Of a DNA stretch of 64,000 nt, positions 15,803-19,683 are shown piece by piece. Every line of letters begins with the position of its first letter. The first letter of the stretch is position 1. The notes beneath the pieces are model-generated. The model had not been told where the DNA came from and ran no database searches. It saw only the letters and a list, made by a program, of their open reading frames with translations. The stretch lies in assembly GCA_964057225.1 (NCBI GenBank), contig OZ059895.1, positions 8,680,001 through 8,744,000 on the forward strand, in the 5' to 3' direction. This stretch comes from Auanema rhodensis (lineage: Eukaryota; Animalia; Nematoda). The position numbers and the translations under genes are program-made.

Positions 15803-18800
15803 ATGAATTTGCCAAACGAGGATAAAATAACCATGGAAAACTTTGCCCTATTAAGGGTATTAGGTAGAGGAGGTGAATTTTTCTTCAAGATATTGAATAA
15901 AATTTGCGCGAATTTATAAATGTGTGAATTTTTCTTTTTCTCTCTATTCTGTCGGAAATGTTGTTGTCAACTTTCTACACAACTTATTCGCATCCATTAC
16001 TCACAAACATGTCATTTGTGAAGCTTGTCATGGATATCCAAGGTCTTGCTTACTGATAAATGCAAAATCTAATAGGATCATATTTACATAAACATACATA
16101 TATGATATATTCTTGATAAACATCTAATCATTTCAGCATATGGGAAAGTCTACTTGGTTCGAAAAGTAGGAGGAAAAGATCATGGCTCCATGTACGCTAT
16201 GAAAGTTCTTCGCAAAACCAGGGTATTTCTATAAACATATTTTAATATATTTATAAGGTATTTATAGGTAATGTCAAAACCAAAAACTTTAGAGCATACT
16301 CATGCGGAACGTAAGGTTCTGGAAAAAGTTAAAGGAGTCTCATTCCTTGTTAATCTACATTATGCTTTTCAAAGTGATACAAAATTGCATATTGTGATGG
16401 GTTTGTTGAATCCATACATGAGCATAGTATCTTATTATTACTATTATAGAATATGTTCGTGGTGGAGAACTTTTCACACATCTCTGTAACAGAGGAAAAT
16501 TCGATATTAAAACCGCCAAGTTCTTTATAGCTGAACTCATAGTAGCCATAGATAGCTTACACAATGTAAGATATGTCGTTAGATAGATTGAGATTCCATA
16601 TTGTGTTTTAGAGAAAAGTTATATATCGAGATCTTAAATTGGAAAATATTCTATTGGACGAGGAAGGCCATCTCAAGCTTACTGATTTTGGTTTAAGTAA
16701 ATTGTTAAATCCAGAAGAATTGGACCGAGCTAATTCTTATTGCGGAACAATTGAATACATGTGAGCATTACGCTTTTTTTTCTTTTGTATTTTTGAATCT
16801 GTTTTTAATTTTAAAACTTTAAGGTCTCCAGAAGTTATCGATAGGCCAGTAGGTGGCTACACAGATGTTGTCGATTGGTGGTCAATGGGAGTTATTGCTT
16901 TCGAATTGTTAACAGGCTGCAGCCCTTTCACAGTTGATGGAGGAAATAATAGCAGTAAAGAAATTGCCAGGTATGCTTTGTAATATGTATGATATTATAC
17001 AAATTGATTAAAGACGGATCCTATCTAAAAGAGTACCCTTCCCAAGTGACATCAATCCTGATGCAAAAGATTTTATTTCGAGATTATTAGAAAAGCGCCT
17101 GGAGCACCGCCTTGGCTTTAACGGAGTTGAAGAAATAATGAAGTATATCATGCAGTTTTTCCATTAGCGTAATATTTGATTCAGACACAAATTTTTGGTT
17201 GATATTGATTGGGAAAAAGCTCGTAGGCGAGAGCTTAAACCCGAAATTGTGCCTATCGTTACTGATGATGTAATTAAAAATTTGATCTTGAGGTCATTAG
17301 TAAATTCAATTTTCAGATGGATGTGCAAAATTTTGCCCAAGAGTTCACAAACCAAGCTCCACTGTACTCCCCAGCGGAGTCACCATTGAATGGAAATGGG
17401 TTATTTAGAGTATGTTGTTTTTTTATCAAATATGTAAGTATATTTTGGGTGCTTATAGGGATATTCATATGTTACCCCATCTGTATATTTTGATAATAAT
17501 AATATAATTGGAGAAGAACTGTTGTCTGCTAATATTCAAGGTTTCTTGAAAGATTCCTCATTTTTTGAAAAGTATGACTTGGATCCATCTGAGAAAGGAA
17601 TGCTTGGAAAAGGTTCCTTCTCTGTATGCAGGTAATTTTCTTCTATTCTGAACTAAAGCGAATTGTAAATAATGCTCTTGTAGACGTTGCACACGCAAAG
17701 AAGATGGAGCTCCATTCGCCGTGAAAATTGTTTCAACTCGGTTCGCCGCTCAAGCGCAGCGTGAAGCTAGTATTCTTGAGTTAGTTAAAGGTATCAAGTT
17801 GTCAAATTAGCCTAATCTACTCTATTCCTATGATTAAGGTCATCCCAATATTGTTCGTTTGATCGAAGTTCATTCGGATCAACATCATTTTTATATTGTA
17901 CTCGAATTACTTGAGGGTCAGGAATTACTTGCACGATTGCGCAGAATGGCCAAATTCACTGAAGTATGTTTATCTTTTTTCTCATGACAGAAGTCTATTT
18001 ATAAAATATTTACTGTTCTATCAGATACAAAAATTGAATTTGAATGCTACCTGTTTTTACATTCATCATGTGCTTTTACATTATTATTGAGTGAATAGAC
18101 TATCAAAAACAAAAAATAATTATATAAATGAAAGAATTTTTTATGTAGTGGTTTTACAAACAAATTTTGTTAGGCTGAAGCGGCACAAATCATGAAACAG
18201 CTGGTATCGGCTGTTAGTTATTTGCACGAAAAGCGGATTGTTCATCGTGATTTGAAACCAGAAGTAAGATCACAATAACTGTAGATCATCTTAGTCTCTT
18301 TGATTTAGAATATACTCTTTGAATCAGATGCTTCGGATGCACGTTTGAGACTTGTGGACTTTGGATTTGCTCGGCAATTGCCAAACGCGTTAGATCAACA
18401 ACTGAAGTCAGTATATCGGAAAATGTACGACCAAATCTACCCATCGACTATGGTTTTTTCAAGCATTTATATTCTTTGTCATAGATCCTAGTTAGGAAGA
18501 ACAGATAGAATATGCACTAGCTAATTTACTAATCACGTGTCATGTATGCTTGAAGAGGATAAGAGATAAGAGCGGATTTTATTGCTTTATTAATCGCACC
18601 GTTTTTGAATAGCACTTTCTGTGTTTTTGTCTCTATCGTCTCATGTTAATAGACATTGATAGTTCGAAGCTCTAATCTTAGTTGATAGACAATAGTCGAT
18701 GGGACTAGAATGCCCTTAAATAAAAGGGCACTCTAGTCTTTTGGCAGTAGCTTTTCGATTTTTTTGTTTTCTTCTAAAATTTATTTTGCTTTGTTAATTG

Positions 18801-19683
18801 TTTAATTTTTGAGGACACCATGCTTTACTTTACAATATGCTGCTCCAGAAGTTCTAGATATTGGAGATACTTTACCTGAGTATAACGAGCAATGTGATTT
18901 GTGGTCACTTGGCGTTGTTTTAGTAAGTTTATTTTTCAATTCCATATTATTTAAATTTAAATTTCAGTTTACCATGCTATCTGGCCAAGTTCCATTCCAT
19001 GCTCGTTCTAGAACCGAGTCTGCCACAGATATTATCCATCGCATCCGTAAAGCTGAGTTTTCTTTTGATAGTGACGCTTGGTCTACTGTTAGTACCGAGG
19101 GCAAAGAACTGATCAATGGTAATGGATTTCAAAGTACTGACTTATATAAATATAATACTTTTAGGTTTGCTCACTGTTGATCCTAATAAGAGATTATCTA
19201 TGCTTCAACTGAGAAATCATCCATGGTTGCAATCAAATTACACCATGCAGTTGGGAACTCCATTGATGACTCCTAATCGTCTACCAAAATCAGCAGGTAA
19301 GTATTTTATTATATGAAATAAAATATTTTATTATACAATAGGTGAAACCTTTAATGAGACGTTGCAAGCATTCCTCAATGCTAATCGGGAAGGTTTCCAT
19401 CTATTGGACGTGGACGCTGCACCTTTGCTTCAAAAGCGTCGCGGTCTTAAGCGTCAAAGTGGTGACAAAGATACTAACCACACTAGTAAAAGGTATGTCG
19501 CTTCGCTTTGATCTTTGTCGTGTTGTAATTGGGTGAGCTTGTAGAACAACAGCATTGGGACCTGTTCCAGAAGAAACATCGAGACCGACTGTACTTGGCA
19601 TGTCGTCTCCTGACGCCATGATGAATTATCGTTGTCCTCAACCTGGCACAATCCGAGAAACACGCGGATCTGATTCCTCATAA
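15803..19683 (+). CDS. rskn-2: MSK/RPS6KA5-type dual-domain ribosomal S6 kinase, multi-exon
   Basis: [23 protein letters not shown]|AYGKV; IYRDLKLEN; DFG...[10 protein letters not shown]; second domain [29 protein letters not shown]; D-domain APLLQKRR; ends TRGSDSS*. TTTTCAG acceptor about 40 nt upstream of the ATG. Confidence 0.95.
18407..18813 (+). promoter_or_regulatory. Alternative 5' splice sites (18407 GTCAGT, 18425 GTACGA) followed by a highly structured intron in rskn-2
   Basis: Both donors are phase 2 and 18 nt apart. Several 12-14 bp stems in the intron (see findings). Confidence 0.65.

Follow-up and report, generated by a model that had tools for sequence, protein, structure and literature searches.

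What decides between two splice donors placed directly in front of the codon for an activating threonine? The question is raised by a gene for an MSK-type kinase in a stretch of 64,000 nucleotides of Auanema rhodensis DNA (contig OZ059895.1, positions 8,680,001 to 8,744,000), which we call the window. Through MSK kinases, ERK and p38 signals reach chromatin and CREB. In the window gene, the activation loop of the C-terminal kinase domain is interrupted by an unusually long intron, intron 14, with two in-frame donors at its 5' end. An initial annotation, made from the sequence by itself, had proposed that the RNA structure of this intron controls the splice choice and so tunes kinase activation or, alternatively, that the intron hosts a noncoding RNA. 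Our analysis leads us to think that the locus holds a conserved, apparently regulated alternative 5' splice site, the splicing of which is probably assisted or tuned by a structured intron of the zipper type.

The sequence character of the window is eukaryotic and nematode-like, with about 33% GC and introns mostly of 42-63 nt bounded by GT..AG. The gene and those of its parts that bear on the splice choice are as follows.

15803-19683, plus strand: coding region of the MSK two-kinase gene (RPS6KA5/4, C. elegans rskn-2-type), 19 exons and 18 introns
18309-18406, plus strand: common part of exon 14, with the DFG motif and the first half of the C-terminal kinase activation loop
18407 (start), plus strand: proximal donor GTCAGT, the first six bases of the 18-nt extension
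18407-18424, plus strand: alternative exon extension, 18 nt, encoding SVYRKM and included in junction 18424>18814 in RNA runs X2-X4
18425-18430, plus strand: distal donor GTACGA, used in junction 18424>18814, GT..AG
18425-18813, plus strand: intron 14, 389 nt from the distal donor or 407 nt from the proximal donor
18813/18814, plus strand: acceptor TTTTGAG/G, common to both donors
18814-18922, plus strand: exon 15, with first codon K/M and the Thr aligned with human MSK1 Thr581

The gene model takes 15 GT..AG junctions directly from RNA contigs and has three further short introns placed by sequence. It is free of stops on translation, and its product of 760 aa (short form) or 766 aa (long form) is predicted to carry an N-terminal AGC-type kinase followed by a C-terminal CaMK-type kinase. 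The 766-aa model aligned over its full length with two-domain S6-kinase relatives (P0065, residues 8-708; P0082, residues 1-704), and tblastn found both kinase domains in the orthologous loci. In protein searches, which used fragments of 143-467 aa, the closest named proteins all came from clade V nematodes, namely, Ancylostoma caninum (P0153, 72%), Nippostrongylus (P0152, 73%), and Heterorhabditis (P0154, 68%), with Angiostrongylus P0001 and P0155 also among them. The A. caninum ortholog P0153 matched the C-terminal kinase domain of human MSK1 (3KN5) with an E value of 2.4e-95, versus about 1e-55 for RSK. Its activation loop aligned on the human ...QPLK-TPCFTLHYAAPE (3KN5), and its Thr-Pro corresponds to human MSK1 Thr581, which we take, from established knowledge, to be the activating site for ERK and p38. 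The K-TPCFT..YAAPE activation-loop motif is present in the window gene model, and among the loops recovered, an RSK-type loop (TPCYTANFVAPE) was seen in P0061 only. Judged by the sequence of its C-terminal domain, the gene is MSK-type rather than RSK-type.

The two in-frame donors (18407 and 18425) and the shared acceptor (18813/18814) are where the initial annotation had placed them. The donors are spaced 18 nt apart, and the frame is kept with either one: splicing from the proximal donor gives QQLK-TPCF, the canonical loop, and splicing from the distal donor puts SVYRKM directly before Thr-Pro. Graded against the general 5' splice-site consensus, both are weak, GTCAGT having a C at +3 and GTACGA having a U at -1 and a C at +4. 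The annotation had also set the length of the intron against neighbours of about 45 nt. Most neighbours are short, but two other introns of the same gene measure 264 and 210 nt.

Evidence for donor use came from contigs of four public RNA runs (X1 to X4), for which run identifiers are coded. In X2, X3, and X4, a short contig with a depth of 144-159 joins 18424 to 18814 and represents the long form. In X1, 18424>18814 is not among the joints listed; four more joints are present, three of them necessarily those of constitutive introns 11-13. The unspliced contig of X1 starts at 18378, 30 nt before the first base that differs under proximal-donor use. Those of X2-X4 start at 18396, 30 nt before the distal branch, and all four end at 18843 (18814 + 29). 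Each run has four contigs, and a postulated fourth contig for X1 of about 60 nt (29 + 30 nt), joining 18406 to 18814 at a depth of about 31, reproduces both affected depth bins, 36 and 52.6, by our own arithmetic. From this contig geometry and depth, we infer that X1 uses the proximal donor (18406>18814) and makes the short form. Donor choice appears to differ between samples, in an all-or-none manner at the contig level. The initial annotation had named exclusive use of one donor as a finding that would speak against it; the contigs point the other way, the distal junction being seen directly in three runs and the proximal one being deduced from contig geometry and depth in the fourth. In X1 only, a contig also has 214 nt upstream of 15765 that do not match the window and are absent in the other three runs. 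They point to an alternative 5' exon or leader, in the sample that apparently uses the proximal donor.

Unspliced intron 14 was present in all four runs as one uninterrupted, unbranched contig from exon 14 to exon 15 at a depth of 12.9-16.9, compared with an exon depth of 41-160. The other introns had a depth of 0, including the 210-nt intron (bin 18018-18171), and DNA contamination is therefore excluded. Intron 14, alone of the gene's introns, is retained or slowly removed. Its retention would end the frame 21 codons past the extension. The words sampled from the intron body were all present in RNA-type runs X1, X2, X3, and X9, the last being a fifth run.

An in-frame extension was found in eight clade V nematode lineages, with a length of 15, 18, or 24 nt (SVRKM, SV[Y/H]RKM, and SVQVLRKM). 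Among annotated or transcribed sequences, the short form (EQQLK-TPCF) is represented by Angiostrongylus cantonensis P0001, Nippostrongylus brasiliensis P0152, A. caninum P0153, and the Caenorhabditis-like transcript P0156. The long form, with SVYRKM, is represented by the annotated Angiostrongylus costaricensis protein P0155, and the Heterorhabditis bacteriophora model P0154 reads SVYRKM and then runs on into the intron. Genomic DNA of A. costaricensis (L001), A. caninum (L002), and Teladorsagia (L004) reads GAAGTCAGT(A/C)TATCGGAAAATGTACG across the donors, and the 26 nt spanning both donors are identical in all three to the window bar one synonymous base; the exon flanking the donors is only about 76-79% identical to that of the window at the protein level. 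Further loci vary in the middle of the insert: L006 has SVHRKM (18 nt, in frame, ending at a GT donor), L008 has SVRKM (15 nt, in frame, with distal donor GTAGGC), and L003, a Caenorhabditis-like genomic contig whose closest named relative is a C. tropicalis fragment, has SVQVLRKM (24 nt, in frame, ending at a GT donor). The initial annotation had mentioned a similar insert in C. elegans RSKN-2; the extension from a Caenorhabditis-like source seen here is that of L003. The GTACG of the distal donor is kept in L001, L002, L003, L004, and L006. Length changes only in threes, the SV..RKM frame is kept, and a GT always comes next, which argues that the long isoform is translated and under coding selection across clade V. 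As read from these sequences, the donor pair has been kept since before Caenorhabditis, Heterorhabditis, and the strongylids diverged, which disposes of a second objection that the initial annotation had foreseen, namely, a lack of conservation in relatives.

The sampled nematodes outside clade V (L005:3861-4061, Toxocara P0158, and P0212-P0216) have no intron between the Lys and Thr-Pro codons, so that within the sampled set only clade V has the intron with its alternative donor. No insert directly before the Thr was present in the roughly 60 MSK-type loops recovered from other animals, and the conserved donor 25-mer had 0 matches in metagenome contigs. The exon pair is absent from L010 (O. 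dentatum). In a search for more orthologs or closer relatives, exact look-ups returned no record for A. cantonensis, N. brasiliensis, or two open reading frames of the window.

We then asked whether intron 14 is structured. The minimum free energy (MFE) of the 407-nt stretch on the plus strand was -104.1 kcal/mol (z -3.98), and 0 of 100 dinucleotide shuffles were as good, so the comparison with shuffled controls that the initial annotation had suggested came out in its favour. The gene's other long introns (264 and 210 nt) served as a control and folded no better than shuffles (z -1.21 and -0.37). Across the 64 kb, intron 14 ranked 1st of 636 same-size segments on the plus strand after GC correction, at -3.1 standard deviations (SD). 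The inverted repeats listed in the initial annotation were found again, and its inner helices appear in both the MFE structure and the ensemble, which we computed with 40 nt of exon 14 and 30 nt of exon 15 included. The predicted elements are listed here.

18440-18454, plus strand: outer stem, left arm of a 15-nt inverted repeat (93%), starting at +16 of the distal donor and +34 of the proximal one
18689-18703, plus strand: outer stem, right arm, 15 nt (93%), ending 110 nt before the acceptor
18703-18738, plus strand: hairpin with arms 18703-18717 / 18724-18738 (93%), 7+7 bp interrupted by a single bulge position, loop of 6 nt, pair probability 0.93-0.98
18415-18435, plus strand: 5' side of a stalk below the outer stem, running from within the extension through the distal donor to the first bases of the intron, with predicted pairing to 18740-18759
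18740-18759, plus strand: 3' partner of the stalk, with predicted pairing to the extension and distal-donor segment
18455-18688, plus strand: inner domain of about 235 nt enclosed by the outer stem, with helices including 18563-18574 / 18622-18633 and 18470-18475 / 18507-18512 around hairpin 18486-18497

The core of the outer stem (18441-18451 / 18692-18702) had an ensemble pair probability of 0.97, and in a duplex test the stem reached a z of -4.6 to -4.9, with 0 of 200-500 shuffles as good. The hairpin at 18703-18738 abuts the outer stem and is directly followed by TTTT. Within the stalk, the helix CCAAA / UUUGG (18431-18435 / 18740-18744) had a probability of 0.85, and the helix AUCGGAAA / UUUUCGAU (18415-18422 / 18752-18759) had a probability of 0.62. 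The overall shape predicted is that of a rod, with the extension and the distal donor facing the segment just 3' of the hairpin. A claim that G-U pairs favour the sense strand stood in part: 19 of the 149 pairs in the plus-strand MFE are G-U, 4 lie within the 12-bp helix 18563-18574 / 18622-18633, and the plus-strand MFE is 8 kcal/mol below that of the minus strand; however, the minus-strand fold of the same stretch (-95.8 kcal/mol) has the stronger z, -5.73.

Two candidate arrangements around the donors were set aside. A hairpin between the two donors (GUCAGUAUAU / AUGUACGAC) amounts to only -6 kcal/mol, is not reproduced in the orthologs, and was rejected. Masking of the distal donor by long-range pairing is suggested by the ensemble, but the shuffle test fails in all species except L003, and we treat it as speculation.

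The orthologous introns share no detectable sequence with the body of the window intron beyond the donor region, and k-mers or splicing-factor motifs common to the seven introns were limited to low-complexity T-rich words. The orthologous intron measures 438 nt in L003, against about 40-160 nt for the others of that gene, and 190 nt in L006, against 26-79 nt, and it remains the longest in these compact genes. Two tests were used for pairing between its ends. The first scored how strongly the sequence just past the distal donor pairs with the remainder of the intron, against dinucleotide shuffles; the second, position-aware test scored the duplex between a donor-proximal (+4..+50) and an acceptor-proximal (-160..-15) segment, against 500 dinucleotide shuffles. 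The results are given for each intron as z and shuffles as good in the first test, followed by p in the second.

Window: z -4.9, 0/200; p 0.002
L003: z -2.9, 2/200; p 0.016
L004: z -2.8, 2/200; p 0.79
L006: z -2.6, 7/300; p 0.016
L008: z -2.3, 10/300; p 0.006
L002: z -1.2, 23/200; p 0.05
L001: z -0.7, 43/200; p 0.03

The pairing recurred in six of the seven orthologous introns, and a Fisher combination that leaves out the window gave a p of 6.5e-5. On 109 random genomic segments of the window, used for calibration, a z below -2.3 was obtained in 2.8%. In L008 the partners are complementary at 13 of 14 positions, with GCAGCAUCCAACUU starting at +4 and AAGUUGGCUGCUGC lying 70 nt before the acceptor. 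The three strongylid introns, which represent three superfamilies, are unalignable except for two shared blocks of about 55 nt whose order is conserved, approximately at L001:2640-2720 and 2885-2960, L002:5720-5810 and 5950-6030, and L004:3890-3970 and 4240-4320. The block cores are reverse complements of each other (ATCGGAGCGG / CCGCTCCGAT and GGAAC / GTTCC). Between the second block and the acceptor are 110-130 nt, and in L001 and L002 this block is the pairing partner. As modelled from these duplex energies, the end-bridging pairing recurs while its sequence is replaced.

Other features of the second strongylid block are a TGGTTGGTT run that is invariant among the species and an ACTAAC present in two of them. 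In L002 this block has two alternative partners, the first block and a GTCGGAG segment close to the distal donor, a prediction that hints at mutually exclusive structures. For the window intron itself, DNA runs labelled as another organism ("organism C," study P4) contain 0.90 and 0.55 of its 31-mers (18430-18760), and we consider organism C to be a nearby relative or a strain that has diverged by a few percent.

These results could also be explained if the donor pair is real and conserved but the folding is incidental, arising from chance or neutral palindromes, and the unspliced RNA simply reflects slow removal of a long intron with weak sites. Several findings lean this way and count against a function of the structure. 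The arms differ among species, so the recurrence is one of energy statistics and not of aligned compensatory changes, and the species found were all too distant from the window organism to show covariation in its stems. The whole-intron z is weak and not significant in L003, L006, and L008 (-1.2, -1.5, and -1.3). A value of -3.1 SD is about what the extreme among 636 draws gives. The stronger z of the minus strand means that perfect Watson-Crick stems cannot separate an RNA function from a DNA palindrome. Pairing centred on the distal donor (-14..+13) was not significant in the window, where 66 of 400 shuffles were as good, or in most species, L003 (1/400) being the only one to pass. On the side of donor use, the proximal junction in X1 is absent from the joints listed, and contigs drop minor forms, so that a complete switch holds only at the contig level. 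Set against incidental folding are the 12-bp perfect stem of mixed composition and the 14/15 hairpin, for which we estimate from base composition an expectation of about 0.01 and 0.001 per intron; the position-aware pairing in six of seven introns, by a statistic that was calibrated; the complementary blocks that strongylids have kept in otherwise unalignable introns; and the persistence of intron 14 as the longest intron in compact orthologs. Of the alternatives this one survives best, although we think it unlikely.

Much less likely is an origin of 18440-18738 as an old foldback transposon of the miniature inverted-repeat transposable element (MITE) type, with the outer stem as its terminal inverted repeats. 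The architecture would suit such an element, with 15-nt repeats (93% complementary) around about 234 nt and a second small palindrome alongside, and the Watson-Crick stems fold equally on the minus strand. The initial annotation had itself named a multi-copy element as a finding that would undo its proposal. We found, however, no second copy within the 64-kb window, and the arm-pair pattern had 0 matches in metagenome contigs. There is no target-site duplication, the left flank (...AAATCTA) and the right flank (ACTAGAA...) having no abutting direct repeat. The RNA graphs of all four runs pass through the intron as a single unbranched contig, and the other inverted repeats in the window are of a different type, low-complexity AT runs. 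In other genera, too, the orthologous intron is long and its ends are bridged by analogous pairings of unrelated sequence, and the helix 18563-18574 / 18622-18633, with its four G-U pairs, can form in the sense RNA only.

Scans for Rfam families, tRNA, and tmRNA in the intron, the whole window, and five orthologous loci found nothing (with Rfam 15, the intron had no match up to an E of 1, the window as a whole had none that reached gathering score, and the five orthologous loci had none), and a telomerase RNA was dropped as a candidate since the intron has no template-like GCCTAA repeat. The other proposal of the initial annotation, that the intron hosts a separate structured noncoding RNA of about 300 nt (18440-18742, ending in the hairpin and the T run) as the source of the intron reads, would account for the compact domain and for an intron depth that is near constant while exon depth varies about 2.5-fold between runs, but it is the least probable of all, since the unspliced contig spans both exon-intron boundaries and its signal is at least partly pre-mRNA (contigs cannot show discrete ends), and since the window intron and its orthologs have no sequence block in common beyond the donor region.

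We therefore return to a conserved alternative donor served by a zipper-type stem. In the mechanism that we propose, the upstream donor would yield the canonical QQLK-TP loop and the downstream donor would insert SVYRKM directly before the Thr-Pro that MAP (mitogen-activated protein) kinases phosphorylate. A segment just past the distal donor would pair with a segment 35-130 nt before the acceptor. Acting in the manner of a yeast zipper stem, this pairing would loop out about 240 nt and bring the donors near the 3' end of the intron, and the shorter effective length could let a long intron with weak sites be spliced in a genome of short introns (~45 nt). By this model the stem acts in splicing, and its stability or timing may affect the efficiency of removal and perhaps the choice of donor. 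The insert would alter the -1 to -6 context of the Thr, with an Arg at -3 (RKM-T-P), and from the sequence it may change which kinases phosphorylate the site and so the activation of the kinase. For the initial proposal of structure-controlled splicing, the balance is mixed: the switch is conserved and appears to be used, the intron is structured, and its pairing is recurrent, but outside L003 the test centred on the distal donor gave no support to control at that donor.

A bolder version holds that the end-bridging structure is itself the conserved switch, kinetic or factor controlled, that decides by stage or tissue between the LK-TP and RKM-TP loops. We regard this as doubtful. If it were true, the Arg at -3 could open the Thr to basophilic kinases or to autophosphorylation, and the switching on of MSK would have been rewired through RNA-structure-gated splicing that was kept across clade V nematodes.

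As kinds, alternative 5' splice sites and structures of the zipper or bridge type are familiar, and one public gene model contains the insert. What appears new is the deep, near-nucleotide conservation of the MSK donor pair and its association with a recurring end-bridging structure of the intron, neither of which was annotated or present in the limited literature that we searched. In that literature, nematode rskn-2 is rarely mentioned, and the gene is almost unstudied. An insert of 5-8 residues before Thr-Pro offers a natural handle on the role of activation-loop context in MAP kinase-dependent activation. The intron would be a tractable animal example of a zipper-type structure in which pairing is kept, sequence is replaced, and the stem lies beside competing donors. 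In the parasitic strongylids, the two conserved intronic blocks are worth annotating.

Two other observations were made in the window. A GC-rich stretch at 9500-10100 on the minus strand (50-54% versus 33%) gave the most stable minus-strand fold of the window scan, at -3.6 SD, and had no Rfam match at gathering score. A subthreshold SNORD24-like match at 17260-17302 on the plus strand (23.8 bits versus a gathering score of 41; E 0.96) overlaps the boundary of exon 8 and intron 8 and is most likely due to chance.

The closest known counterparts of the intron are the yeast zipper stems of RPS17B/RP51B and RPL7B (Rogic et al. 2008, PMC2536676; Nat Struct Mol Biol 2025, PMC12350175; for RPL7B, PMC12311795). 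As in those introns, an early segment pairs with the 3' part of a long intron in a short-intron genome, and the middle is looped out. The arms of yeast zipper stems are also poorly conserved, the motif recurring with different sequences (PMC12350175). By the definition used for Saccharomyces cerevisiae, 10 nt or more separate the 5' splice site from the start of the stem, 20 nt or more separate its end from the branch point, and the linker totals 42-85 nt (PMC12350175). In the window intron, the outer stem opens at +16 counted from the distal donor, or at +34 from the proximal one, and lies within the 5' limit. The right arm is 110 nt from the acceptor, or 75 nt when the hairpin at 18703-18738 is discounted, so that the linker could be in range. 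Unlike yeast, nematodes have no defined branch-point consensus, so that the yeast geometry is not strictly applicable. The MSK stem also differs in that it is predicted only and lies beside two competing donors of a coding alternative splicing event.

Structures that modulate the choice of a 5' splice site are known from the stem-loop of tau exon 10, TSL2 of SMN2, and the conserved complementary "RNA bridges" of Drosophila and humans. The MSK intron resembles these in that complementary intronic segments adjoin an alternative donor, and the strongylid blocks could pair in mutually exclusive ways; it differs in that donor masking has statistical support in L003 only. Compared with human MSK1 and MSK2 (3KN5), the short isoform has a loop of equal length in the same K-TPCFTL.YAAPE context, whereas the long isoform adds 5-8 residues (SV..RKM) directly before the Thr. 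Finally, like other tandem in-frame 5' splice sites, the MSK locus has two GT donors 15-24 nt apart that both keep the frame. Unlike typical tandem donors, the pair is unusually deeply conserved, is near-invariant even at synonymous positions, and adjoins an activating phosphosite.

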